64,000 nt of DNA from contig JAANOX010000037.1 in NCBI GenBank assembly GCA_020184695.1, positions 62,001 to 126,000 of the forward strand. Direction: 5' to 3'. Below are positions 5,695-52,739 of the stretch, in pieces; position 1 is the first letter of the stretch, and the number at the start of each line of letters is the position of its first letter. A program made the position numbers and the translations under genes. Origin of the DNA: Histomonas meleagridis 2922-C6/04-290x (lineage: Eukaryota; Protista; Parabasalia). The notes beneath the pieces were generated by a model. The model saw only the letters and a program-made list of their open reading frames with translations, ran no database searches and was not told where the DNA came from.

Positions 5695-6117
5695 AAAATT
5701 CAAAATTTATTTATTTGTGAATTTAAAAAATATACTTATAGTTTAAGCTATCCACAACAACAAATTTTCTAATTTCATCCAAAAAAAAAGAATCATTCAA
5801 ATAGAGCCTGGCTTTTTCAGTGAAATACGATCACAACCACAGGGGTGGGTTGGAATGTGATTGAATAGTTAACATCGAAATTGAATGATTTTTGTGAATT
5901 TAAAAAATATTAATAAAAACTGAATGCAAAAACAGGTTGAATAGAAAATGAAATGAATGGTTTACCAAAGGGTAGGGAACAAAGTATCGATCATTCAAAA
6001 AATGGAACCCTGCTTCGACTTGGTCAATTTATTGTTAAATCGAATGCATAAAGTCAAGTGCATGCTTAATATAGAAGTCTAACTTAAGGCAGGTTCTAAT
6101 TTATAATTTATAATAAA

Positions 6118-6277
6118 GGAATTGATGTTAATGCAAAAACTATTCATTTTAATAATTTGAAACATGTTTTAATAATTTGAAACAGCACTTCATATAGCAG
6201 TCATAAATAATAATATGGAAATAGTACAATTACTTTTAGATAAAGAAATTAATATCAAAACAATTTTGTCCACTTAA
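6118..6277 (+). pseudogene. Orphan 3' end of a split-ankyrin array (GIDVNAKT, 40-nt spacer, terminal cassette TALHIAVINNNMEIVQLLLDKEINIKTILST*)
   Basis: Manual translation. Spacer 6142-6181. Same subfamily as the 28.9-30.5 kb array. Confidence 0.8.
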
Positions 6278-6559: not shown

Positions 6560-7150
6560 TCTTTTTGCATTGCTTTGTCAAGTAAATCACTAAATAATTG
6601 GATTGATCTAAAAATATTATTTGGAAACATAAATTCATGAAACTAAATATGAATATTATAAATAAGAATTCCTTCTTTGTCAAGTAATAATTTAATTATT
6701 TTTGAATGGCCTTTTTGAGCTCTCATGAGTGCCGTAAAAAATATTCTAAACAAATTCCAAATCTTATATTAAAATATCAAATTATTAAAATAAATTCTGA
6801 ACAAAACAAATAAATATCTTTAGCATTATTCCTTCTTGTTCTAGAAGTAAAAGAAATGTTTCTGTTTTACTTTTTTTTGATGCAAGTATACATACTGTTT
6901 AAAATGATTGAAATAATTTCAAAATGTTTTTTGAAATATGAAACGATTAAGATGAATATAACATAAAATATAAAAAGATTTTTACAATTGACATTAATTT
7001 CTTTGTGCTCACGAATTAATTTAAAGACTTTTGTTTTGCTATATTTAGATGCACTTAGGAATACTGTATTAAATATTTCACAATTATTATATTGAAATAT
7101 AAAATTATTGAAGCAAATTTTATCAATAATTTTTTCTTGAATTCGATATC
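6560..7150 (-). pseudogene. Degenerate split-ankyrin cassette array
   Basis: Minus-strand cassettes start at 7067 (TVFLSASKYSKTKVFKLIREHKEINVNCKN), 6898 (TVCILASKKSKTETFLLLLEQEGI, 7-nt deletion) and 6735 (TALMRAQKGHSKIIKLLLDKEGI). Spacers of 79 and 80 nt match the consensus. Confidence 0.7.
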
Positions 7151-7377
7151 TGCAGGATTCATACCTATGTTTTTTTGTTCAAAAAAAATAATTTTACATA
7201 TGTAGATAGATAATTTTTTTTTGACATTATCATATTTAATACTTAAAACATTTTACATTTTAAAGATACTATCATAATTAAATTTCGATATGGAAATTCA
7301 CATCCTAGAAATTTTCTAATGTCACTTTTGTTATTACACATAAAGGTGCAAAAAGATAAAAATATAACAAATCAAAA

Positions 7378-8562
7378 ATGAATGAAACACTTCAAAATAT
7401 CAAACAAATAATATTTAGTTTAGACAAAGAAAATATTATTCGCTCAATAAACTTAATAATTAACAAATTTGATCATACTCATCCATATTCATTTAATTTA
7501 ATCATTATTCATATGTTATACATTTCATTTATTTTGGAAGTAAAAGATTATGGAATATATATAAAATTCATAATGGAAATTCAAAAATTCGAAGAAAATA
7601 AAAAAATCAAACCAGCATTTAATAAAATTTTGAAGAATTATCTATTATGCAGACAATATGAGCATGAATCTTTTTATCTTCTTGATAAATTGATTGAATG
7701 TAGTTTTATTGAACCATACATTTTCAAAGATATAGCATATTTTATACATCGTTTTCCAAAAAAAGGCTATCAAATCGTAATTTCAGATAAATTTCATAGA
7801 AAAATCGCGGAAAATTATGAAGAATTATCAAAGAATGATTGGGAGCTTCATAAGAAATTAATTGAAGAAGGAGTGAATCCAAATGAAATTGCTAAAATGA
7901 TTCGAAATAATGAAATAGAAAAACTTCAAGAAATATCATCACAACCAAATTTTGATTTTAATCAAACAATAGAACCATCACTTTATGAAAGATGTTCTTT
8001 TATTAGCCAAAGTAATGTTACATTAATTGATTATGCAGCATTTTTTTCTTCTGTTAAATGCTTTAAATATTTACTTATGAATGGTGCAAATGTATATAAT
8101 GCAGGTAAATATGCAGTTGCAGGTGGAAATCTTGAAATTATTCATTTATGTCAACAAAATCATGTATCATTTAAAGATGCATATGAAACTGCAATTCAGT
8201 TTCATAAAAATAATATTTTTAAATATCTTTATGAAAATAAAATTTTAATAGTCAATAGTTCCGAAAAATTAGGTGCTAAATGTATCAAATATTATAACTA
8301 TGAACTTTTTACATTTTTAGAAAAAGAAGGAATGGATGTCACCAATTATATTATTAATAAAACAGCAAAAATTGGGAATTTGTATCTTGTAAAATATTTT
8401 CTTCATAATCATCAAATTCCAAATGATATCATAGTTTCTTCAATAAAATCACAAAATATTGAACTTATAAAATTTCTTTTGATGCAAAAAGGGTTTGATA
8501 TTAATGCTAAAAATATATATTTATTTTATTTATTATTTATTTCAATTTTTTTATATTTCTAA
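7378..8562 (+). CDS. DUF3447-type ankyrin-repeat protein, first coding block of split locus C
   Basis: LIDYAAFFSSVKCFKYL, AVAGGNLEIIHLCQQ and AIQFHKNNIFKYL are typical of the trichomonad DUF3447/ankyrin family. The ORF ends inside the first spacer. Confidence 0.85.
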   Translation: MNETLQNIKQIIFSLDKENIIRSINLIINKFDHTHPYSFNLIIIHMLYISFILEVKDYGIYIKFIMEIQKFEENKKIKPAFNKILKNYLLCRQYEHESFYLLDKLIECSFIEPYIFKDIAYFIHRFPKKGYQIVISDKFHRKIAENYEELSKNDWELHKKLIEEGVNPNEIAKMIRNNEIEKLQEISSQPNFDFNQTIEPSLYERCSFISQSNVTLIDYAAFFSSVKCFKYLLMNGANVYNAGKYAVAGGNLEIIHLCQQNHVSFKDAYETAIQFHKNNIFKYLYENKILIVNSSEKLGAKCIKYYNYELFTFLEKEGMDVTNYIINKTAKIGNLYLVKYFLHNHQIPNDIIVSSIKSQNIELIKFLLMQKGFDINAKNIYLFYLLFISIFLYF

Positions 8563-9500
8563 ATAATATTTGGAAAATATTTAATTTATTTGAAACAGCA
8601 CTTATTTATGCATCTAAAAAAGGTTATACAAAAATAGTTAAATTACTTCTTGAGCAAGAAGGAATTGATATTAATGCAAAAAATATTTATTTGTTTCATA
8701 TATTATTTATTTTAATAATTTGATATTTTAAAATAATATATGGATATTATTTATATAATTTAGAACAGCACTTATAATTGCAACTTTTTATCATCGCATA
8801 AAAATAATTGAAATGCTTCTTAATCAAAAAGAAATCGATTTAAATGTTAAAGATATTTCTTTACTTTATTGATTAAATAATTTGATTATTTGATGTTTAA
8901 AAATAATATTTCAAAATTATTTATATAATATAGGACTGCATTTATGTCTGCAATTCTAGAAGGTGATTGTGAATGTGTGCAATTATTTATCGAAAAAGAA
9001 GGAATTGATATTAATACCTTTGATAATTATTTTACTTATGTGAAATTTAATAAAATAATTTTATGATTTAAAATAATATTTGGAAATTGTTTATATTATT
9101 TAGAACACCACTTATGTTAGCATCTGAAAAAGGTAAAACTGAAATAATAAAATTACTTCTTAAACAAAATGTTATTAACATCAATTCTAAAAATATTTTT
9201 TTGTTTCATGTAATGTGTAATCAAATTGTTTGATGGTTCAAAATAATATATGGAAATTTTTTCAATTATTTAAAACAGCACTTATTATAGCGTCTGAAAA
9301 AGGCTTCCCTGAAATTGTTAAATTACTTCTGTTTCAAAAAGGAATTAATATAAATGTTATAGATATTTATTCATTTAATTCAATATATATTTTAATAATT
9401 TAATATTTCATTCTAATTTTTGGAAATTAATCAAATTATTTAAAACAGCTTATGCATATGCAACTCAAAAACGCAACATTAAAATTTGTTGCATACTATT
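8515..9500 (+). repeat. Split-ankyrin array C: six 80-nt spacers alternating with 90-nt ankyrin cassettes, exact 170-nt period
   Basis: Cassette Thr codons at 8595, 8765, 8935, 9105, 9275 and 9445. The five internal cassettes are stop-free. Confidence 0.95.
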
Positions 9501-9525
9501 TTTCTGTTTGCCAAAAGTTTTATAT

Positions 9526-9810
9526 CTAATGTTTTCTTGTATTTCTCTTTTTGTTGTTATTTTTTTGAGCTTTAGGTGGGTTTTTCTTGGCTTTTTTAGC
9601 TTGTGGAAGTTGTATACTAACACTCATGTTAGTGTCAATTCCACTTTGTTGAAGAAGTAAATTTATTATTTCAGTATTGCCTTTTTCAGTTGTTAAAATG
9701 AATGATGTTTTAAATGTTCCAAACAATTTCCGAATATTATTTTAGAATTTTTGATATTTTCAAATTGAATATTCTTTTTTGTTTTAAAAGTAATTTGAAA
9801 ATTTCAATTT
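9526..9810 (-). pseudogene. Orphan ankyrin cassette remnant, convergent with array C
   Basis: Minus strand: EIFKLLLKQK, a partial spacer ending TAATATTCGGAAATTGTTTGGAACATTTAA, then TSFILTTEKGNTEIINLLLQQSGIDTN (cassette 9619-9708). Confidence 0.65.
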
Positions 9811-24197: not shown

Positions 24198-26630
24198 TTA
24201 AATATCTCGCAATCCTTCAGGGCGCCTACGTGTGGTTCTTGCTCTTCTTTTTCTGGTGTCAGGAATACCTTGGTATGTCGAAGGGATAATTGGTTTATCA
24301 GCGTTAGCGGTGGCATTGGAGGTAGTGGAGGTAGTCGGAGGTGGCCTGATTTGGTTAGGTTCGATTTTTTGGCTGAACCTGTTTTCTAAGAATGCTCGAT
24401 AATTTTCATTAATTTTAATTCTTCCAATTGGTTTTTCTATGTTGTTATTTTTGATTTCTTTCTTTGGTATTACTTCTTCTTTCTTTGGTATTACTTCTTC
24501 TTTCTTTGGTATGATTACTTCTTTCTTTGGTATGATTACTTCTTTCTTTGGTATTACTTCTTCTTTCTTTGGTATGATTACTTCTTTCTTTGGTATTACT
24601 TCTTCTTTCTTTGTTATGATTACTTCTTCTTTCTTTGGTATTACTTCTTTCTTTGTTATGATTACTTCTTCTTTCTTTGGTATGATTACTTCTTTCTTTG
24701 GTATGATTACTTCTTCTTTCTTTGGTATTACTTCTTCTTTCTTTGTTTGGATATCACCTGATGTGCTTTGTCTTGCTTTTTCCACCAAATCACCAATTTC
24801 CTCTTTAACTTCATTAAACATATTCTCTATTTGATATGAATACGTTTTGAATAAGTTTGGATCAGTGAGATATTTTTCAGCCTCGAACAGTACATCTGAT
24901 ACTTTTTCTTCTTCTTCAGACGAAATTGTACCATTAGCCTTACCCTTTTCCATAGCTTTTCTTGAATAATTACAATAATTTTGGAATGTTTCTTTTGCAC
25001 TAATCTTCCTATTAAATTCTCTATTATTATTAAACATATCTTCTTCTTTTTTATCCTTCTTTTGTTCATTTAATGAACTATTTAATGAAATAGTAATACC
25101 TTTAACATTACCCGAAGTTAAATCTTGAGCTGAAACATGCATAATACCATCTTCATCCACATCAAAATAAATTTTGATCTTTTGATTTACTCTCGGTGCT
25201 GGAGGTATGTTATTTAAATAAAATACACCAAGTAATTTGTTGTTAAATACTTTTTCACTTTCACCTTCATAAACTTTGATTGAAGCTTCTTTTTGATAAT
25301 CTTTTGAGGTAGAGAAATATCTAAATGCCGTTGTTGGTAAAACTGTATTCTTGGGTATAAATACAATCATTTTCCGACCTGTTGCTTCCACCCCTAATGG
25401 ATAAGGATTAACGTCTTCAAGTGTAAAGTTTTGAATTGATGGCGATGGATCTTTTTTAAGAACAGCAGCAATAAGTGAAGCACCAAATGCTATTGCTTCT
25501 TCTGGATCGATATCACAACAAATTTTCATGGATCCAAAATAGTCATTAAGCATTTCTTTGATATATGGAATTCTAGATGAGCCTCCAACAAGAACAACAT
25601 TATCTATCTTTGATTTTTTCAAATGTGCATCCTTTAAAACCTTTTTGACTGTCAATAATGTTGAGTCGAAAAGGTTTTTGTTGAGTTCATTAAATTTATC
25701 TCGATCAATAGGTTCGGTTATATAATTATTATTATTATCCAGACAATTAACAGTGGTACGGAACATTTGCGAAAGATTTATTTTTGCTTTTTCACATGCA
25801 TCTTTTAAAAAATGAAGTAAACGTTGTGATTTTCGTGGATCGAAATTATATTTCTTTTGAAAAATAGATGTTATGTAATTAATTAAATTATTATCAAAGT
25901 CTTGTCCACCAAGATGTGAATTTCCTGCTGTTGCAAGAACTCGAAAATGTGATCCATTAACAAGCAAAATTGATGCATCAAATGTTCCGCCACCAAGGTC
26001 AAAAACGAGAATATGTTTCTCGCCTTGGGGTTGAGTTTTATACGCATATGCTAGTGCCGCTGCTGTTGGTTCATTGATTATTCGGAGGACGTTTAAGCCT
26101 GCACATTTCGCAGCTTCTTTGGTTGCTTGTCTTTGGCTGTTATCAAAGTAAGCGGGAACTGTAATAACGGCGTCCGTAACAGTAGCCATAAGATTTTCTT
26201 CTGCAACCGATTTCATTTTCTCTAAAATAATCCCTGAAATTTCTTCTGGCAAATATAGCTTGGGTTGATTACCAAGTTGAATCTCTATCAGTGGCTGATT
26301 GTTGGTACCTTCAACAACTTTAAAAGGCCATGTTTTCTTATCGTTTTGAATTATTTCATCATTATATTTACGTCCTATCATACGTTTGGTATCATAAATA
26401 ACATTCCTAGGATTTTCTGCTAAACCAAATTTCGCTTCTTCACCAACAATTATTTCATCTTCTGTAAATGCCACCAGAGATGGTGTTGCCTTATTATCAA
26501 TTTGATTTTTCATAATTGTGCATTGATCATTATAAAAGACACCAACACAAGATCGTGTTGTTCCTAAATCAATCCCAATTGCACCTGTGAATTTGGGTTG
26601 ACGCTTCATAACAATGTTTAAAAATGCCAA
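24198..26630 (-). CDS. Hsp70/DnaK family protein with a repetitive C-terminal extension
   Basis: [56 protein letters not shown]. Confidence 0.93.
24460..24740 (-). repeat. Coding tandem repeat KKE(E)VI(I)P/T in the Hsp70 tail
   Basis: About 13 units of 18-24 nt (plus strand TTCTTTCTTTGGTATGATTAC and variants). Confidence 0.9.
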
Positions 26631-27035
26631 AAAAAGGTTACATCTTTTTTTTTTTTCCTTTTATTCCCCATTCTGATGGAGATAATAAGGGATAATCACA
26701 GATAAAAGCAGTACTGTACAAAGTAAACATATTATACTTGTTTAAAATTTATAATATCTTTCTTTTCCTTTTCGAAAAAATAATGAAGAACATTCGTTTT
26801 TTGTGGGAGAAAAAAAAAGTATCAAATCAAAAAGTGGATCAATCGCACTGTCATAATCTTTGTCAAAATACTTACCCTTCCTATTATTGACACTTTTCGT
26901 TGCCAGTCAACGACCGTTAAAATTTTGATATCCATGGATGAACGATCGTTCCCGGTTTTCCTGTGAAATTTTTTTGAATGTGTTCCTGTCACTTTTTTGT
27001 TATTGGGGTGTACGTTTAAATTCTCGTTAGATCAA

Positions 27036-28418
27036 ATGACTGAAGAACAAAAGAAACAATTCGCAAAAAAACAACCTGCTAAATGCAGAACAACAGATTT
27101 CTTTTGGCGTGGAGGAGATCCCCTTCGAGAACAAGAGTATTTGATCGAAGAATACAAAAAAGCTCTTGCTGAATTTCGACAAAGTGAAGCACAATTAAAA
27201 GCAGCTAAAAAAGATGTAAATGATGCGCAAGATGTGCTTAATGAACGAGAAGGTTATGCCATTGCCTTAGCTTCATATTTAGAACAAGACACCACATATT
27301 CCAGAAAAGAGAGAGAACTAAGAGCTGAACTATCAGATCTCGAATCTGAAATTGAAAAGAAAGATCGAGAACTTAGGGTTATCAAATCTATTCATAATCC
27401 AGCAACGTCAAGTGCACTTGTGAAAGAAAATGCAACATATATGATTGAAATTCAACGAGGCAATCAGACAATCGAAAATTACAGATCACAGCAAGATGAG
27501 TACAAAAGACAAATGGCAGCATGTACAGTTAATAATAGATATCGCCATGCTCTTGAACTCGAATATGAAAGAGATCGAACACAAAACAAGAAAATACATC
27601 TCCACAAAATTGTAAACAGCACAAAAAATGAGTTTGAAGAACAAAAAATAATTAAAATACTTCAAGATCCCGACTCAAGAATTGAAAGAAATGCACTTCA
27701 AAGACTTGTCCCTCTTGAAGTCGAGATAGCTCTTTTGGAAGAAAAGCTGAATCTTCATCCTACAAAACATGATAATTATTTATCATTATTAATCGATCAA
27801 ATTGAAGAACTTAACAGTAGAATGGAAGAGATTGGGTTAGGTGATGAAGTTGTTGCCACTGGGAAGATAAAAGAGAAAGTTTTTGGAGGGACCACAGATA
27901 GTGATGAATCATCTGAATATGCAAAATCAGACACAGAAAACAAAACAAATTCGTCTGGTGAAGAAAGGAAAGACAGCTCTAAATCAGATAAATCTCATTC
28001 AGACAGTGATAAAAGTAAATCACAAAATGAATCACATTCTGAAAACAATAAAACTGAATCGCATTCAGATAACAACAAAAGCTATTCTCAAACTGATAAA
28101 CGTCGAAATGAATCACATTCTGAATTTAGTAAAAATAAATCAAATTCAGATAATGATACACATTCGAACTATAGTAATAATAAATCGCACTCAGACAGTG
28201 CTAAAAGTGAATCTTTGAATGATAAACATCAAACTGAATCACATTCTGAATTTAGTAAAAATAAATCTGATTCAAGTAGCGAAAAAAGTGAATCGTCAAA
28301 TGATAAACATCAAAAGGATTCACATTCGGATTATAGTAATAATAAATCACATTCGGACAAAAGTGATTTCCAAAATGGAAAACAGAAAGAAAATTTTTCA
28401 GATGATTTTGATGAATAA
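27036..28418 (+). CDS. Hypothetical coiled-coil protein with a Ser/His/Lys/Asp-rich repetitive tail
   Basis: First ATG at 27036; heptad-like N-terminal two thirds; repeated ESHSEFSKNKS and SHSD motifs. Confidence 0.75.
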   Translation: MTEEQKKQFAKKQPAKCRTTDFFWRGGDPLREQEYLIEEYKKALAEFRQSEAQLKAAKKDVNDAQDVLNEREGYAIALASYLEQDTTYSRKERELRAELSDLESEIEKKDRELRVIKSIHNPATSSALVKENATYMIEIQRGNQTIENYRSQQDEYKRQMAACTVNNRYRHALELEYERDRTQNKKIHLHKIVNSTKNEFEEQKIIKILQDPDSRIERNALQRLVPLEVEIALLEEKLNLHPTKHDNYLSLLIDQIEELNSRMEEIGLGDEVVATGKIKEKVFGGTTDSDESSEYAKSDTENKTNSSGEERKDSSKSDKSHSDSDKSKSQNESHSENNKTESHSDNNKSYSQTDKRRNESHSEFSKNKSNSDNDTHSNYSNNKSHSDSAKSESLNDKHQTESHSEFSKNKSDSSSEKSESSNDKHQKDSHSDYSNNKSHSDKSDFQNGKQKENFSDDFDE

Positions 28419-28639: not shown

Positions 28640-28950
28640 AAGTATTTATAAATTGCATTTGGAATTTCTTCAAATGAGAAGTTTTGTCACTATTATGGGC
28701 ATCTTCAAATGGTCATACAGAAATAGTTAAATTACTTCTTGAACAAGAAAGAATCGATATTAATGCTAAAGATATTTAACTATTTTATTTTGTATTTATT
28801 TAAATAATTTGAATTTCCAATTTTTTTCCGAAAATTATTTATTTGATTTCAAACAGCACTTATGAATGTAACTTGGATCAACAATATATAAATAATAAAC
28901 TACTTTCGACTCGTAAAGATTTCAAAGATGATAATTTTATTGTTCATTTA
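28640..28950 (+). pseudogene. Orphan split-ankyrin remnant, convergent with array F
   Basis: Cassette 28684-28773 (LSLLWASSNGHTEIVKLLLEQERIDINAKD), 79-nt spacer, then a degenerate TALMNVTW cassette. Confidence 0.75.
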
Positions 28951-30473
28951 AGTAAATAACTTGTTTTAATATTAATTTCTTTATCAAAAAGTAATTTTAC
29001 TATTTCTATATTATTATTTTTAACTGCTATATGAAGTGCTGTTTCAAATTATTAATACATATTCCAAATTATTAAAACATATTCTAAATTATTAAAACAT
29101 ACATCAAATTATTAAAACATATTCTAAATTATTAAAACATATTACAAATTATTAAAACATACATCAAATTATTAAAACATATTCTAAATTATTCAAATGA
29201 ATAGTTTTTGCATTAACATCAATTCCTTCTTTCTCTAAAAGTAATTTTTACTATTTCTATATTATTATTTCTAACTGCTATATGAAGTGCTGTTTCAAAT
29301 TATTAAAACATATTAAAAATTATTAAAACATATTCTAAATTATTAAAACATATCCAAAATTATTAAAACATATTTCAAATTATTAAAACATATTCTAAAT
29401 TATTAAAACATATTTCAAATTATTAAAACATATTTCAAATTATTCAAATGAATAGTTTTTGCATTAACATCAATTCCTTCTTTCTCTAAAAGTAATTTTA
29501 CTATTTCTATATTATTATTTCTAACTGCTATATGAAGTGCTGTTTCAAATTATTAAAACATATTAAAAATTATTAAAACATATTCTAAATTATTAAAACA
29601 TATTACAAATTATTAAAACATACATCAAATTATTAAAACATATTCTAAATTATTAAAACATATTAAAAATTATTAAAACATATTTCAAATTATTAAAACA
29701 TATTTCAAATTATTAAAACATACATCAAATTATTAAAACATATTCTAAATTATTCAAATTAATAGTTTTTGCATTAACATCAATTCCTTCTTTCTCTAAA
29801 AGTAATTTTACTATTTCTATATTATTATTTCTAACTGCTATATGAAGTGCTGTTTCAAATTATTAAAACATATTAAAAATTATTAAAACATATTCTAAAT
29901 TATTAAAACATATTACAAATTATTAAAACATACATCAAATTATTAAAACATATTCTAAATTATTAAAACATATTTCAAATTATTAAAACATACATCAAAT
30001 TATTAAAACATATTCTAAATTATTAAAACATATTACAAATTATTAAAACATACATCAAATTATTAAAACATATTCTAAATTATTCAAATGAATAGTTTTT
30101 GCATTAACATCAATTCCTTCTTTCTCTAAAAGTAATTTTACTATTTCTATATTATTATTTCTAACTGCTATATGAAGTGCTGTTTCAAATTATTAAAACA
30201 TATTAAAAATTATTAAAACATATTCTAAATTATTAAAACATATCCAAAATTATTAAAACATATTTCAAATTATTAAAACATATTCTAAATTATTAAAACA
30301 TATTACAAATTATTAAAATGAATATATTTTGCATTAACATCAATTCCTTCTTTCTCTAAAAGTAATTTTACTATTTTTATATTATTATTTTTAACTGCTA
30401 TATGAAGTGCTGTTTCAAATTATTAATACATATTCCAAATTATTAAAACATATTCTAAATTATTCAAATGAAT
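28944..30473 (-). repeat. Split-ankyrin array F: near-identical cassettes separated by expanded 20-nt minisatellite spacers
   Basis: Spacers of 60, 140, 240, 220, 160 and 160 nt built from AATAATTT(AGA/GGA/GTA/GAT/GAA/TTA)..ATGTTTT 20-mers. Cassettes read TALHIAV(K/R)NNNIEIVKLLLEKEGIDVNAKT; the last ends with TGA at 28944-28946. Confidence 0.95.
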
Positions 30474-31583
30474 AGTTTTTGCGTTAATATCAATTCCTTT
30501 ATCTAAAAGTAATTTTACTATTTCAATATTTCCTGATTCAACCGAGCGCAATAAAATTGTATTTGGAATTTGTTGATTTTCTATGATACTATCCATTAGA
30601 AATGTATTTCCATTTCTTGCAATTTCCTCTATAATATCTTCAGTTATTTCCTTTGTTTCTTGTTCTAAAAATGAAAAAATTATATAATTATTATAATTCA
30701 GACATATTTTTTTAAAATATGCAATGTCTTTTTCAGATTTACCATGATTTATATTAGGTGATTGTTTATTGGATTTTGTTATAACTTCTCCTTTTTTCTT
30801 TTCATAAAGATATTTAAAGATATCATTTTTATGAAATTCAATTGCTGTTTCATATGCATCTTCAAATGATGAATGATTCTGTTCACATAAATGAATTATC
30901 TCTAAACTTCCACCTGCAACTGCATATTTACCTGCGTTATCTATTTTAGAACCATTCATAAGTAAATATTTAAAACATTTAACAGAAGAAAAAAATGCTG
31001 CATAATCAATTAATTTAACATTTTCTTGATTAATAAATGAACATCTTTCATAAATTGATGGCTCAATGATTTGATTAAAGTCAAAATTTGGTTGTGATGA
31101 TATTTCTTGAAGTTTTTCTATTTCATCATTTCGAATTATTTTTGCTATTTCATTCGGATTATGCCCTTCTTCATTAAAATTCTTCAGGTTAGCAAAATCA
31201 TTATTTAGAACCAATTCACAATTTTTCTTATTGTATTTTGCAGGATCTGTTTCGAATAATCCTTGTTCGTCCATCTTTCGAAGAAGGAAAAATGATTCTT
31301 GTGTTGTTGTTTGCAGTAAGTATAGATTAAATATATGAACTAGGTTTGTTGTATTTTTATTAGTTTTTTCTTCTTCTAAATTTAACATCAATAAGTATTT
31401 AAAAATTGGGAATTTGACGTTTAATTGAGAAGCAAATGCTGTATATATGAACCCAGAAATAAGAAGATTGAATGTGTATTGTCTATTGTAAGTAAATAAT
31501 TCTATTGTTGATTGAACTGATGATTCGATATTTTCTTCGTTGAGATTAAAGATGATTGACTGCAACGATTTAGAGAGCTCCAT
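30423..31583 (-). CDS. DUF3447-type ankyrin-repeat protein, first coding block of split locus F
   Basis: Same family motifs as 7378..8562; ends at TAA TAA inside the first 60-nt spacer. Confidence 0.85.
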   Translation of the reverse strand: MELSKSLQSIIFNLNEENIESSVQSTIELFTYNRQYTFNLLISGFIYTAFASQLNVKFPIFKYLLMLNLEEEKTNKNTTNLVHIFNLYLLQTTTQESFFLLRKMDEQGLFETDPAKYNKKNCELVLNNDFANLKNFNEEGHNPNEIAKIIRNDEIEKLQEISSQPNFDFNQIIEPSIYERCSFINQENVKLIDYAAFFSSVKCFKYLLMNGSKIDNAGKYAVAGGSLEIIHLCEQNHSSFEDAYETAIEFHKNDIFKYLYEKKKGEVITKSNKQSPNINHGKSEKDIAYFKKICLNYNNYIIFSFLEQETKEITEDIIEEIARNGNTFLMDSIIENQQIPNTILLRSVESGNIEIVKLLLDKGIDINAKTIHLNNLEYVLIIWNMY

Positions 31584-42113: not shown

Positions 42114-43346
42114 ATGAATAAAGGTTCAAAAGTAAGGCCATATGAAAGGATTAATCAGCCTGACAGCTTAAATCAAGATTATGGTAAATCACAACATGTT
42201 GAAAATAAAAATGTTCAGCCGATTCGGCAAAAAGCAGAATTGAGAAGAGAAAATCTTGATATTTCACCAATTCATACTGTTTTCCTTCGTAACCTAGACT
42301 CAAAGTTAAGTACACAAAAACTCAAAGAGATAGCTTCTGAATTTGGAGAAGTATTTTTAACTTTTAGCCGTGTTAATCAAAAAGGAATAGCTTTTATTAC
42401 TTTTTATGATTCTCGTGATGCTAAAAAAGCTGTTGATGGACTTGAGGGTCGCAATATTCAAAACCGAGAAATCCACACTTCATTTGCATATTCATCACCT
42501 GATGCAAATTTCGACCCTACTCAAACATGTTCTACGATAACTGTTAAGATTTCACCCGGAGAACAAACTGTTACCAAAGATGAGGTCCAAGAGGCATTTT
42601 CGAAATTTGGTGAAATTAGCGATTTTATTGAAAAAAGCGAAAATGAGTTTGTTGTCAAGTATTATGATCTTCGAGCGGCCAAGAAAGCTGTTGAAGAATC
42701 TGGTACTGTTGAGATTCATGATATCAAAACTGAAGTTGTATTTAATCTTGAAGATGATGACGACCAAAAGAGTCGTCCTACAGAAACTGAACGTGAACGC
42801 GACGAACGTCGAAGAGCCGAACGTTCTCGTAACAACAGACGAAAAGAAGATCGATATCGAAATGATAATTCTAAAGGAAGAAGAGATGACAACTACGAAC
42901 AAAACTATCAAAACTACCAAGGCCCATATCCGGGGCAACCATATCCATACCCATATCCATATTCATATATGAATCCAGGATTTATATATATGGGTTATCC
43001 TCCACAACCATATGGTATGGCGTACCCTTATCCACCACAACAGTACCCCCCTGTGAATCAAGAGTACTACCAACAGCAGTATATGCAACAACAACCGCCT
43101 CAACAACAGTACCAACAACCGCCGCCACAACCTCCACAACCGCAACCGCCGCAACAACAACCGCAACCGCTTCAACCGCAACAGAACGATCAGACTCAAC
43201 AACAACAAACTATAACAAAGCCTGAAGCAACAGAAAAGAAATCACCATTTAACCCTCCAGATACACAACAAGGTAATGCAGATGGCGATAGTGCAGAAAA
43301 GCCAGACATCAGAGGATTACTCCAAAAAATGTTTGGTAGTGAGTGA
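42114..43346 (+). CDS. RNA-binding protein with two RRMs and a P/Q/Y-rich low-complexity tail
   Basis: TVFLRNL, KGIAFITFYDSRDAKKA, FVVKYYDLRAAKKA. Confidence 0.88.
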   Translation: MNKGSKVRPYERINQPDSLNQDYGKSQHVENKNVQPIRQKAELRRENLDISPIHTVFLRNLDSKLSTQKLKEIASEFGEVFLTFSRVNQKGIAFITFYDSRDAKKAVDGLEGRNIQNREIHTSFAYSSPDANFDPTQTCSTITVKISPGEQTVTKDEVQEAFSKFGEISDFIEKSENEFVVKYYDLRAAKKAVEESGTVEIHDIKTEVVFNLEDDDDQKSRPTETERERDERRRAERSRNNRRKEDRYRNDNSKGRRDDNYEQNYQNYQGPYPGQPYPYPYPYSYMNPGFIYMGYPPQPYGMAYPYPPQQYPPVNQEYYQQQYMQQQPPQQQYQQPPPQPPQPQPPQQQPQPLQPQQNDQTQQQQTITKPEATEKKSPFNPPDTQQGNADGDSAEKPDIRGLLQKMFGSE

Positions 43347-49145: not shown

Positions 49146-49451
49146 TTATTGTAGAATTTAAATAAAAACAAAGCGTTAAATAAATTTTTATTAAATTTTG
49201 TTATCAGGGAGATACCTAAAACTAATAAAGTGATAATGCATTTAGAAGATTGTGAGATTTGTTCGGAATTGTTCTGGCAAACTCGAATTTAAATCATAAT
49301 TGAATAAATTTATACGATGTATACACATGAAGTGTATTTCTACCAAATTTATCTTTTCTTATTCCTAATGATGTGTGAAATGACCATTTATGTATTCAAA
49401 ACCATAAACGTGCGCCTTTTATTTGGAAGAAAAAAAATTCTATCGAACCAC

Positions 49452-50717
49452 ATGAATACACTTACCACACTCCAAAATTTAATATTCGATTTAACCGAGG
49501 AAAGTCTTGAGTCTTCCACTCAACAAATAATAAAATTATTTGACGTAAATTACCCCTATTCATTTAATTTTGTTTTAAGCAGGTTAATTTATAGTGCATT
49601 TTGTTCACACGTAAAAAAATGTGATGATAATGTATATATAAATTTTATTGAATTAATGCAACAAAAGGAAAAAGAAATTATTAAAAATAATTTTCAAATA
49701 ATTGAAATTTGTTGTAATGTTTTAATCAAATTTAATTCTCAAGAATCATATTATTTTATAGAAAAAATTATTGAGAAGAATTTAGTTGATACCAGCATTA
49801 CAAGAAATATTAATAGTTTATATTTTTCACATTATAAAACAGATAAAGAAAACCAAAAAATTATTCATAAAATTACTCAAAAATATAATAGTTTTAATTT
49901 GGTTCAAAAATACTTTTTGGATAATTATGAAAAATTATCAAAGAATGATTTTAAACTTCATAAGCAATTAATTAAAGAAGGAGTTAATCCAAATGAAATT
50001 GCTAAGATAATTCGAAATGATGAAATAGAAAAACTTCAAGAAATATCATCACAAACAAATTTTGATTTTAATCAAACAATTGAACCATCACTTTATGAAA
50101 GATGTTCATTTATTAATGAAGAAAATGTTACATTAATTGATTATGCAGCATTTTTTTCTTCTGTTAAATGTTTTAAATATTTACTTATGAATAATACAAA
50201 TGTAGTTAATACAGGCAAATATGCAATTGCAGGTGGAAATGAAGAAATTATTCATTTATGTGAACAAAATCATTCAACATTTAAAGATGCATATGAAGCA
50301 GCAATAGAATTTCATCGAAATGATATCTTTAAATATCTTTATGAAAACAATATAGAAGAAATTGATAATAAAAAAATCAATTACCTAAGGATAATATGCA
50401 TAGAATATAACAATTATGAACTCTTAACATTTTTAGACAAATGGGATACATGTATTTCTAATTATGTTATCAACAATGCTGCAAAGACAGGTAATTTAAT
50501 GCTTGTTAATTTTTATCTTCAAAATAATCAAATTCTCAATGATATTTTGGTAATCTCCTCGAAATCTGGAAATAGAGAACTTGTTAAGTATTTTCTCGAA
50601 CAAGGAATTGATGTTAATAGTAAAGATTTTTATTTGTTTTATTTGATATTTCTTTTAATAATTTTTAATTTCAAAATAACATTTGGAAATCATTTTGAAT
50701 ATTTTATACATCACTAA
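49452..50717 (+). CDS. DUF3447-type ankyrin-repeat protein, first coding block of split locus H
   Basis: Family motifs as above; likely start MNTLTTLQN at 49452 (ORF track starts 49317); runs through the first spacer and stops out of frame in cassette 1. Confidence 0.85.
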   Translation: MNTLTTLQNLIFDLTEESLESSTQQIIKLFDVNYPYSFNFVLSRLIYSAFCSHVKKCDDNVYINFIELMQQKEKEIIKNNFQIIEICCNVLIKFNSQESYYFIEKIIEKNLVDTSITRNINSLYFSHYKTDKENQKIIHKITQKYNSFNLVQKYFLDNYEKLSKNDFKLHKQLIKEGVNPNEIAKIIRNDEIEKLQEISSQTNFDFNQTIEPSLYERCSFINEENVTLIDYAAFFSSVKCFKYLLMNNTNVVNTGKYAIAGGNEEIIHLCEQNHSTFKDAYEAAIEFHRNDIFKYLYENNIEEIDNKKINYLRIICIEYNNYELLTFLDKWDTCISNYVINNAAKTGNLMLVNFYLQNNQILNDILVISSKSGNRELVKYFLEQGIDVNSKDFYLFYLIFLLIIFNFKITFGNHFEYFIHH

Positions 50718-52304
50718 ATTTAGCATCTAAAGAAGATGATTCAGACATAGTTAAATTACTTCTTGAACAAAAAGGAATTGATATTAATGCTAAAGATATT
50801 TGTTTGTTTAATTTGATATTTATTTTAATATTTTGATATTTCAAAATGATACTTGGAAATTATTTAAATTATTTGAAACAGCACTTATGATTGCATCTAT
50901 CGAAGGTGATAAAGAAATAGTTAAATTACTCCTGAAACATAAAGGAATTGATGTCAATGCCAAAGATATTTATTTATTTTATTAGCTATTTTCTTAAATA
51001 ATTTTTTATTTTAAATTAATATTTGGAAATTCTTTAAATTGTTCTTAACAGCTCTTAGTATTGCAACCACAAGAGGATACACAGAAATAGTTAAATTGCT
51101 TCTTGAGCTAGATGGAATTGATGTTAATACTAAAGATATTTAATTATTTTATTTGATATTTATTTTTATAATTTGATTTTTCATAATATAACATGGAATA
51201 TATTTAAATTATTTGATACAGCACTCTTTTTTGCATATATACATAAAAATATAATAATATTCAAAATGCTTCTTAAACAAAAAGGGATTGATATTAATGT
51301 TATATATATTTGTTTCGATAATTTTCACTCTCAAAATTGTATTTCGTAATTATTTAAACTATTTTTCACAATACTTATGGATGCATCAGAAAAAGGTAAC
51401 ATAGAAATTGTTAAATTACTTCTTAAACAAGAAGGGATTGATATCAATTTTAAAAATGTTTATTTGTTTTATTCGATATTTATTTTAATAATTTTTTATT
51501 TGAAAATAAAATAAGGAAATTATTTAAATTCTTTGATTCAGCACTTATTTTGGCAACTCAAAATAGTCATGTAAAAATAGTTAAATTGCTTCTTGAGAAA
51601 GAAGGAATTAATATAAATATCAAAGATTTCTATCTGTCTAATATATAAATTATTGTAATAATTTAATATTATAATATAATATTTGGAAACTATTTCAAAC
51701 ATTTGAAACAGCACTTATTATTGCATCTTTCGATGGGAATACTGAAATAGTTAAATTACTTCTTGAAAAAGAAGGAATAGATGTTAATTTTAAAACTATT
51801 TATTTGTTTTGTTTGATGTTTGTTGGATGAATATAATATTCCAAAATCATATTTGGAAATTATTCAAAATATTTTGTACACCACTTAATATTGTATCAGC
51901 AAATGGAATTATAGAAGTCGTTAAATTGCTTATTGAACATGAAGAAATTAATGTTAATGCTACAGATATTTATTTATATTATTTGATATTTATTTTAATA
52001 ATTTGATATTTCAAAATAATATTTGGAAATTATTTGAGATATTTAGAACAGCACTTATTTTAGCATCTTTAAATGGTCATATAGAAATAGTTAAATTACT
52101 TCTTGAACATGAAGGAATTGATATTACTGCTAAAGATATTAATGCGTTTTAATTAAAATTTATTTACAAAATTTGATATTACAAAATAATATTTGGTAAC
52201 AGCATAATACATTTAATACAGCACTTATTTATGCAACACAAAAAGGTTTCACAGAAATTATTAAATTAATTCATTTAAAAAAAAAAAAAATTAATGAATG
52301 CTAA
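50628..52304 (+). repeat. Split-ankyrin array H: ten spacers (nine of 80 nt, one of 60 nt) and ten cassettes
   Basis: Cassette first codons at 50708, 50878, 51048, 51218, 51368, 51538, 51708, 51878, 52048 and 52218. A further decayed unit lies near 52400. Confidence 0.95.
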
Positions 52305-52739
52305 TTATATTAATGTGTTTTATTTAAAATTTATTTCAATTATTTAGTTTTGTGATAATTCAAAAAATTACTTGGGAATTGATTAAAATATTGGAAAGGA
52401 AACTTATTATTGCATCTAAAAGTGAATATACTAGTCTTTTTTTAACTTGCTGGTAAATGTGATATCAAAAAATATATATGTTTAATATATAATATATGGT
52501 CAAGTCAACTTTTAATAATAATTTTGTTCGAAGGAAATTTTCATATTTTACCAGCAATTATAAAACGTGTGCGCACGATTCTCCCACATAAATAGCGCTT
52601 TATTTGAAAAAGTTCAACATAATTTACCTAGATACATATATATATATATAAAGATAAATATAAAACTAATAAAATAACACATTTACCTTATATCAAAATA
52701 AATATAATCAAAATCAAATTCAAAATTTATTATATTGAA

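Follow-up and report, generated by a model that had tools for sequence, protein, structure and literature searches.

Out-of-frame ankyrin cassettes downstream of a DUF3447-ankyrin gene of Histomonas meleagridis: a candidate split coding sequence with intron-like spacers

The stretch of DNA analyzed here (the window) comprises 64,000 nucleotides (nt) of the parabasalid Histomonas meleagridis 2922-C6/04-290x (GenBank assembly GCA_020184695.1, contig JAANOX010000037.1, positions 62,001 to 126,000 of the forward strand); coordinates refer to this window unless another locus is named. The subject of this work is gene H, an open reading frame (ORF) of 466 amino acids (aa), and array H, a 170-nt tandem repeat that lies directly 3' of this ORF and consists of alternating ankyrin cassettes and spacers. 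The gene H ORF, with a probable start Met at 49452, encodes an N-terminal domain, DUF3447 (Pfam PF11929) and two ankyrin-like repeats, continues into the first spacer (spacer 0) and terminates there, at a stop codon in 50715-50717. The window also contains two paralogues, at loci C and E, with identities of 54% and 46%; all three ORFs match PF11929, with scores of 34.7-38.2 bits. The order of DUF3447 followed by ankyrin repeats is that of parabasalid proteins, and homologues are present in Tritrichomonas.

Tandem Repeats Finder delimits array H at 50602-52336, and an nhmmer profile recovers 11 units within 50552-52393. Each 170-nt unit combines a 90-nt cassette (T-A-L ... N-A-K-D) with an 80-nt spacer. 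Every cassette matches 29 of the 33 positions of the ankyrin repeat (Pfam PF00023, model positions 4-32), which leaves each repeat short of three or four hairpin residues; the PF00023 scores of nine cassettes lie at 27-36 bits, above the curated cut-off of 21.1 bits. Ankyrin repeats would be expected to be contiguous in one frame, but here each cassette is in the -1 frame of the preceding one. A 20-nt unit (GATATTTATTTTAATAATTT-like), present in four copies that have diverged, makes up the spacer, and its first copy begins at the Asp codon; among the 16 junctions of arrays H and C, 15 have a spacer of 80 nt and one a spacer of 60 nt. The features of gene H and its array are as follows.

49317..50717, plus strand: gene H ORF, 466 aa; N-terminal domain, DUF3447 and two ankyrin-like repeats
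50541..50627, plus strand: last repeat within the ORF (DILVISSKSGNRELVKYFLEQGIDVNSKD), N-cap-like, of a type unlike the downstream cassettes
50628..50707, plus strand: spacer 0, 80 nt, read by the ORF as a hydrophobic tail
50708..50797, plus strand: cassette 1 (TSLNLASKEDDSDIVKLLLEQKGIDINAKD); most similar to the first cassette of array C (82%)
50798..50877, plus strand: spacer 1, 80 nt, four diverged 20-nt units
50878..50967, plus strand: cassette 2 (TALMIASIEGDKEIVKLLLKHKGIDVNAKD), Pfam Ank match
50968..51047, plus strand: spacer 2, 80 nt; stops block every upstream-to-downstream frame path
51048..51137, plus strand: cassette 3, Pfam Ank match
51138..51217, plus strand: spacer 3, 80 nt
51218..51307, plus strand: cassette 4, the most diverged; loop Gly lost, yet open
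51308..51367, plus strand: spacer 4, 60 nt (one 20-nt unit fewer); in frame, with a stop inside
51368..51457, plus strand: cassette 5, Pfam Ank match
51458..51537, plus strand: spacer 5, 80 nt, begins GTTTAT
51538..51627, plus strand: cassette 6
51628..51707, plus strand: spacer 6, 80 nt
51708..51797, plus strand: cassette 7, Pfam Ank match
51798..51877, plus strand: spacer 7, 80 nt
51878..51967, plus strand: cassette 8
51968..52047, plus strand: spacer 8, 80 nt, nearest to the consensus
52048..52137, plus strand: cassette 9, the last fully intact one; Pfam Ank match
52138..52456, plus strand: end of array H, spacer 9 and two degenerate terminal units

The terminal unit at 52218-52301 contains a run of 13 A and a stop, and has no Pfam match; the final ankyrin-like piece of the array lies within an ORF at 52352-52456. 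The spacers have recurrent edges. Their first codon is ATT or GTT, the second codon upstream of the cassette Thr is TTT or TTC, and the codon immediately before Thr is highly variable (GAA, AGA, AAA, CAA, GAT, AAT, TTA and others) but is never a stop; the third codon upstream of Thr is TAA in two units of array C and in all units of array E. Joining K-D-(I/V) to F-x-T-A-L would yield the canonical 33 residues. Inside the spacer, TGG/GG within ATATTTGGAAAT at spacer positions 57-59 (for example, 50854-50856 and 52024-52026) is retained in 20-22 of 23 spacers, unlike the other G sites, which decay fast; it would read as the Gly of an x-G-x-T hairpin in the upstream frame or as Trp in the downstream frame.

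Purifying selection acts on the cassettes at the protein level, and the spacers are read in no frame. A preliminary description of this DNA had claimed that the 14 internal cassettes of the two arrays (nine in H and five in C) contain neither stops nor indels. All 14 are exactly 90 nt long, with no stops in their own frame compared to 33 and 70 in the other two frames. When the observed substitutions were permuted within the cassette, with base types and sharing among units kept, 6.7 cassettes were expected to contain a stop where none does (P=0.001), which bears out the claim. The same holds for the use of synonymous codons at the conserved Leu, Gly, Thr and Ala residues: 32 of 117 events are synonymous, against 24.7+-2.9 expected under permutation (P=0.01). 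Applied to the spacers in the frame of the next cassette, this permutation predicts stops in 10.9 of 15 and stops are present in 10 (P=0.38), and the spacers behave neutrally in all three frames; the neutral value returned by this control validates the test. The spacers thus do gather stops freely, as had been stated, with the qualification that in arrays H and C they also keep an exact length and a 20-nt periodicity.

The distribution of changes among codon positions is that of coding sequence. Per-site differences from the consensus amount to 0.115 at codon position 2 and to 0.175 in spacers (P=0.0016 in a base-stratified test), and codon positions 1 and 3 show no difference from spacers; the profile over the three positions is 0.36/0.19/0.33 in the cassettes and 0.33/0.20/0.35 between the translated N-terminal ORFs of the paralogues. 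Overall divergence is 0.289 in cassettes, 0.294 in spacers and 0.25-0.35 at the four-fold sites of the paralogous ORFs, and this equality makes the spacers usable as a neutral clock. The estimate of dN/dS on aligned cassettes that the preliminary description had proposed as a check does not discriminate: the Nei-Gojobori ratio of nonsynonymous to synonymous differences (pN/pS) amounts to 0.79 in the frame of the cassettes, but the two other frames yield 0.60 and 1.12 and the spacers 0.67-1.04, and a measure with such similar values in its controls carries no weight here. Variation clusters at residues 4-5, 7-9 and 11-12 (nt 21-40), where pairwise differences reach 0.43-0.46 compared to 0.15-0.17 in the framework, and the residue before Thr is variable as well. 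The reported concentration of variation on helix-1 and loop residues is hence confirmed; it hints at the diversified binding repertoire that had been suggested on this basis, but the overall divergence of the cassettes equals that of the spacers and of the synonymous sites of the N-terminal ORFs.

The contrast between cassettes and spacers extends to other loci of the family. Cassettes are broken in none of 22 cases behind intact ORFs and in 7 of 20 in transposon-cut or orphan arrays (Fisher P=0.003). A larger sample with premature stops at the neutral rate was the outcome that the preliminary description had named as contradicting translation; accordingly, such stops are not found in the intact genes and are found in part in the dead ones. 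In two further Histomonas arrays (L004 and L010), length changes occurred in 12 of 19 spacers, whereas frame-breaking changes occurred in 3 of 21 cassettes (P=0.003); the sole change of cassette length in an intact array is an addition of 3 nt (L002). Among the possible readings, translation of the cassettes at some stage, as had been suggested, has the best support.

The layout is common to the whole gene family and in relatives persists past synonymous saturation. A profile of the N-terminal domain, run against JGI metagenome contigs, identified 35 loci of uncultured organisms (L012-L046), on contigs of up to 215 kb with names beginning with Ga0074193_, Ga0209639_ and JGI24731J21663_. These relatives are 20-37% identical, have a GC content of 0.29-0.35, and form a family of at least 270 members in an uncultured organism. 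Their genes consist of an ORF of 230-330 aa followed by 10-15 ankyrin units, with frames rotating 2,1,0 (for example, L036:6687-7960, L046:6412-7570 and L025:6705-7750). The spacing of units is 116 nt, that is, 99+17 (n=119), or 99 nt (n=76), other values being rare; the insert is 17 nt long in 119 of the 125 insert-bearing junctions. Across 116 distinct 116-nt junctions, the upstream frame is stop-free up to nt 90 and the downstream frame is stop-free from nt 111, and nt 94-110 contain stops in all frames at about the expectation from composition; this pattern indicates that exactly 17 nt are non-coding.

The 17-nt inserts are T-rich, with a first dinucleotide of GT in 37, AT in 33 and others in 46, and a last dinucleotide of TT in 47 and AT in 36; their length is kept and their sequence is free. 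The mean pairwise difference within arrays of relatives is 0.40/0.27/0.49 at the three codon positions and 0.53 in the insert, and many arrays are saturated. Saturated synonymous sites, a slowly changing position 2 and an insert of fixed length together indicate that these are old arrays, with cassettes under clear purifying selection. Aligned by eye, the first 20-mer of the Histomonas spacer corresponds to the insert of the relatives, which suggests that the spacer could be this element multiplied about four times. Several other inserts and linkers were noticed. L034 (590-1200) and L024 have inserts of 19-20 nt with clean GT..AG borders and in-frame ankyrin hairpins; if spliced, these would undercut the 23 nt quoted as the trichomonad minimum. 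In L007, a more distant gene, one insert of 23 nt precedes a cap repeat that has a basic tail. L011 (1915-2056; ENA metagenome) has a 63-nt, in-frame, open linker followed by just one more cassette, which ends in a natural stop; this linker shows 13 differences from the Histomonas consensus, one of them at codon position 2 (P=0.04).

Within Histomonas, a search of the window with the unit profile revealed, besides H, C and E, array B and five single fragments. The other family loci of the window are the following.

7378..9534, plus strand: locus C; 394-aa DUF3447 and ankyrin ORF at 7378-8562, five 170-nt units, terminal piece from 9445
28966..31583, minus strand: locus E; 386-aa ORF at 30423-31583, then six nearly identical cassettes
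6602..7185, minus strand: orphan array B; 3-4 units, no upstream ORF, frame-breaking indels; a decayed control
9500..9708, minus strand: orphan terminal cassette; 63-codon open frame with basic tail ...KKRNTRKH, convergent with array C

The cassettes of locus C start at 8595, 8765, 8935, 9105 and 9275. The spacers of array E (28966-30560) measure 60-240 nt and consist of 3-12 near-identical 20-nt copies (AATATGTTTTAATAATTTRG-like), which gives units of 147-330 nt and a variable frame relation between successive cassettes; near-identical 20-mers between near-identical cassettes point to a recently active minisatellite. The terminal cassette of this array ends with ...DKEINIKTSYLLK followed by a stop. 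In the cassette at 29293 a homopolymer is longer by one A, which could be either a real frameshift or an error of long-read assembly. Short convergent remnants face array B (6113-6258, plus strand) and array E (28684-28900, plus strand).

Outside the window, the annotated Histomonas gene L010 has four intact cassettes with spacers of 82, 46 and 81 nt, and its array ends in a distinct cassette (NALFYANNLGKDGQEVAEIIKKKRK) with its own stop and a basic tail. L004 (Histomonas contig WSYJ01000186.1) is a family gene interrupted by about 1.25 kb that include a remnant of a Mos1/mariner-type transposase (L004:5266-6500, a 249-aa ORF; PDB 4u7b, E=7e-10); the annotation calls the upstream part alone, as a 'cask-interacting protein'. 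Its array comprises 17 units, is older (0.39 pairwise), and has five broken cassettes and spacers of 9-91 nt.

The organization of these loci indicates that the arrays are probably the split ankyrin domain of the adjacent gene rather than a store of templates. The last repeat within the ORF is of the type DIL..S.KS.N.ELVKY.LEQ, and three paralogues and about 14 relatives have this type at the corresponding position; the arrays close with a cap-like cassette that has its own stop and, in L010, the orphan terminal cassette at 9500-9708 and L007, a basic tail. The succession of N-cap, internal units and C-cap is the order of an ordinary ankyrin domain. The cassettes do differ in frame, as the preliminary description emphasized, but this is a by-product of the 170-nt period, and the "out-of-frame cassettes" are internal repeats of the ankyrin domain of the neighboring gene.

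The interpretation that we favor, albeit tentatively, is that the array is a coding sequence in which a non-canonical, intron-like insert splits the hairpin of each repeat and is taken out of the RNA. Array H would be the C-terminal ankyrin domain of the DUF3447-ankyrin gene, with each cassette supplying residues 4-32 of one repeat and with an AT-rich non-coding insert interrupting the hairpin between successive repeats. In Histomonas, multiplication of the 20-nt unit would have enlarged this insert to about 71-74 of the 80 spacer bases, and the missing hairpin residues would come from the first codon of the spacer (ATT/GTT) and the last two (TTT and the variable codon that is never a stop). 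A splicing-like step that depends on neither GT..AG nor the trichomonad motifs would then remove the inserts and thereby join the cassettes to the upstream ORF, yielding one ankyrin protein. The layout of the spacer, with fixed ends and a variable middle, is intron-like: the 5' end (RTTTRT) and a 3' block (ATATTTGG plus 17-18 nt) are kept across loci, and the length of the middle varies. In-frame junctions devoid of an insert exist as well, with 12 nt in the relative L005 (KN-VMFE-SAL) and 9 nt in L004, a recent paralogue of which has 9+17 nt. The insert might be derived from an intron, with removal at the RNA level as the most likely mechanism, a view that we hold with the same reserve as the interpretation itself. 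A broader proposition, to which we attach less confidence, is that parabasalids might possess an undescribed, length-measured and sequence-independent mode of removal (or ribosomal skipping) of short T-rich inserts without GT..AG, which measure 17 nt in relatives and which a 20-nt minisatellite would have enlarged to 60-240 nt in Histomonas, at every ankyrin hairpin in a family of hundreds; this could also account for part of the Trichomonas 'split gene' puzzle.

Several observations weigh against removal of the spacers from the RNA. We enumerated every in-frame, stop-free GT..AG pair around each junction; 31 of the 38 scanned Histomonas junctions have none, and the few candidates rebuild no normal ankyrin hairpin. 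Among the 17-mers of relatives, GT..AG borders occur in 6 of 116, compared to 4.8+-2 by chance. RNAalifold detected no pairs that would form a conserved RNA fold or a bulge-helix-bulge in the spacers. The near-neutral evolution of the spacer sequence implies that any removal signal is short or positional. TAAA-like strings are common in the AT-rich spacers and, as 3'-end signals of Trichomonas vaginalis, could end the mRNA early. Decay is plain in some arrays (L004 and B). The public annotation (GCA_020186115.1) contains no gene model for the ORFs 49317-50717 and 7378-8562 or for their array loci, and protein collections contain no joined-cassette product or transcript. The strict trichomonad intron motifs (PMC12316389) are likewise missing: the arrays and the fetched loci contain no match to the extended 5' motif GYAYGY/GTWYWD, to 3' motifs of the ACTAACACACAG type or to the 3' motif with its fused branch site (RCTAACACAYAG or TCTAACH(1-2)AACAG).

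Specific borders and roles were also considered and rejected. Use of the ACAG in the Thr-Ala codons as a 3' splice site is contradicted by the relatives, which show ACG GCA, ACC GCA and ACA CCA there, that is, synonymous or conservative changes. Excision with AT..AC borders or between TATTTG repeats bounded by TA would take out lengths (82 and 69 nt) that leave the frame unrestored. A -1 frameshift at T_TTA_AAT or at stops is blocked in 6 of 15 junctions, and the site is not conserved in relatives. The hydrophobic tail of the ORF as a membrane anchor is contradicted by tails of 1-30 residues among relatives. Coding of the spacer in the frame of the next cassette was discarded because stops occur there at the neutral rate, despite an open consensus and a weak synonymous excess (P=0.045). 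The exact 80-nt spacer as evidence of selection is weakened by the lengths of 46-91 nt in the older arrays L004 and L010.

Two alternatives concern the fate of the spacer as such. The arrays could be dead tails, left when a frame-breaking 20-nt duplication within the hairpin truncated an ancestral gene, after which the family spread with untranslated, slowly decaying cassettes; we consider this unlikely. It would account for the failure to find splice signals or an annotated gene, and the 80-nt spacer can be read as a 60-nt core to which one tandem 20-mer has been added. In the downstream frame the consensus spacer is free of stops, and the in-frame, 63-nt linker of L011 is open too. Decayed arrays and scattered fragments, as well as ORF tails of 1-30 residues, fit this scenario too, but the arrays are clean behind intact ORFs and not behind broken ones. 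Moreover, the spacer clock predicts stops in about half of the cassettes where none are observed, codon position 2 is constrained, and the cassettes of relatives are intact beyond synonymous saturation. Alternatively, the spacers could stay in the mRNA, with the ribosome skipping or shifting over them through programmed frameshifting or bypass, a rather improbable course. The insert of fixed length (119 of 125 are 17 nt) with saturated sequence resembles a measured step, yet no matching take-off and landing codons or direct repeats 17 nt apart were found: in the relatives, triplet matches number 0-6 of 116, identity between positions 17 nt apart equals the expectation from composition, and the insert is flanked by neither a repeat nor a matching codon, while the 80-nt spacers, inspected by eye only, showed none. 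A single -1 shift gives a stop-free path in 113 of the 116 junctions of relatives, but 109+-2.4 are expected by chance (P=0.09); an apparent selection for such a path was an artefact of shuffled coding flanks that disappeared under the proper null. In Histomonas, 6 of 15 junctions lack a stop-free path for a single frameshift, so that no stretch is open in both frames there, and there is no conserved slippery heptamer. Although 17 and 80 both equal 2 modulo 3, the relatives' 118-nt variant equals 1, and the spacers of Histomonas (46, 60, 63, 64, 75, 80-83, 91 and 140-240 nt) fall in all classes modulo 3, so the same frame relation does not hold everywhere, as it would with a programmed -1 shift. 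For T. vaginalis, 923 frameshift-'split' genes and, from long-read RNA, mature mRNAs spanning adjacent predicted genes have been reported (bioRxiv 10.64898/2026.08.31.748405), which lends some plausibility to recoding. Nevertheless, spacers of all classes modulo 3 with stops in every frame imply that only removal can join the cassettes.

Two other explanations, in which the cassettes serve variation, appear very improbable. The first portrays the array as a silent store in cis from which recombination or gene conversion would alter the expressed ankyrin repeat or repeats, as in antigenic variation; this agrees with tandem, promoter-less, open cassettes between repeated spacers, with the variable surface positions and with the recent turnover of units in array E. 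However, the repeat within the ORF that adjoins the array is of one and the same distinct type throughout the paralogues and relatives, with no sign of copying, which speaks against the earlier suggestion that the cassettes are templated into translated genes; besides, a crossover between spacers still leaves a spacer before every cassette, and the arrays are ordered from N-cap through internal units to C-cap. Hardly any more credible is a slippage switch, in which loss of one 20-mer (80 to 60 nt) would bring the next cassette into frame and protein length would differ from cell to cell. The repeat has the properties of a contingency switch, its length not being a multiple of 3 and its copy number ranging from 3 to 12, and spacers of 60 and 63 nt exist, the one in L011 being open and in frame; but an ON state calls for an open frame, and stops in the would-be frame occur at the neutral expectation, the spacer cores are open in 7 of 15 only, and all 60- and 63-nt spacers of Histomonas contain stops. 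Removal of intron-like inserts from the RNA remains our preferred, if tentative, interpretation of the arrays.

The surroundings of the family loci agree with a parabasalid origin, with a GC content of about 28%, long intron-less ORFs and a eukaryote-type tRNA-Thr(AGT); the window also encodes actin, Hsp70, ADA2 and a BEACH protein. Tandem repeats of a different kind are found within other ORFs: a 21-nt repeat of 13.5 copies, in frame, at 24456-24745, within an 810-aa Hsp70-family ORF (24198-26630, minus strand); coding repeats with 27-, 45- and 81-nt units at 28022-28359, within ORF 26997-28418; and a coding repeat with a CAACAACCGCCG-like 12-nt unit at 43088-43170, within ORF 42114-43346.

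Neither the genome paper of Histomonas nor the other literature that could be searched was found to mention the arrays described here. Whether the frameshift-split genes of trichomonads are dead or recoded has been a question since 2007 (bioRxiv 10.64898/2026.08.31.748405), and the arrays offer a clean comparative handle on split genes, namely, dozens to hundreds of independent junctions of fixed geometry, at each of which the flanking coding pieces are under selection and the intervening piece is not. If the inserts are removed or skipped, they would represent a new class of intron-like element or of recoding in a deep-branching eukaryote, and many ankyrin genes of Histomonas, a parasite of poultry, would be mis-annotated as short or absent. 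If they are not removed, the strong conservation of the cassettes calls for another explanation.

The inserts and arrays can be compared with several known systems. Trichomonad spliceosomal introns are of type A, 50-196 nt, and type B, 23-28 nt (PMC12316389). Like these introns, the inserts are short, T-rich, non-coding interruptions of parabasalid coding sequence; they too combine a variable middle with conservation at the 5' end and in a block that keeps its distance from the 3' edge, and one lineage of relatives (L034) has 19-20-nt inserts with clean GT..AG. Unlike them, the inserts lack GT..AG, GYAYGY and the ACTAAC...AG motif, those of relatives are, at 17 nt, below the reported minimum of 23 nt, and an insert is present in every repeat, 9-15 per gene, whereas the known genes have a single intron or, rarely, two. 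Ultra-short introns of fixed length are found in other eukaryotes, such as those of 15-16 nt in Stentor, which keep GT..AG and a branch A; they share with the inserts a very narrow length range and free interior sequence, but the inserts have neither GT..AG nor a branch A. Translational bypassing, known from phage T4 gene 60 and from the 'byps' of Magnusiomyces mitochondria, likewise involves non-coding gaps of tens of bases inside an ORF, which in gene 60 and byps are retained in the mRNA; the present gaps number in the hundreds in a nuclear family, and have no matched take-off and landing codons and no conserved hairpin. The silent-cassette systems of antigenic variation (Borrelia vls, Neisseria pilS and trypanosome variant surface glycoprotein (VSG) pseudogenes) resemble the arrays in their tandem, unexpressed-looking open cassettes beside an expressed gene; unlike in these systems, no copying into the expressed repeat is seen, and the cassettes form an ordered, capped domain. 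The arrays also resemble the 'split' and 'readthrough (RT)' genes of T. vaginalis, in which the ORF pieces of one protein, including those of ankyrin families, are parted by frameshifts or stops. A new frameshifting mechanism was raised for the 923 split genes in 2007, and whether they are pseudogenes or recoded is debated (bioRxiv 10.64898/2026.08.31.748405). Unlike in those genes, the break in the arrays is regular, falls at the same position of the repeat, has a fixed length and is conserved across species, and there is comparative evidence of selection on each of the out-of-frame pieces.

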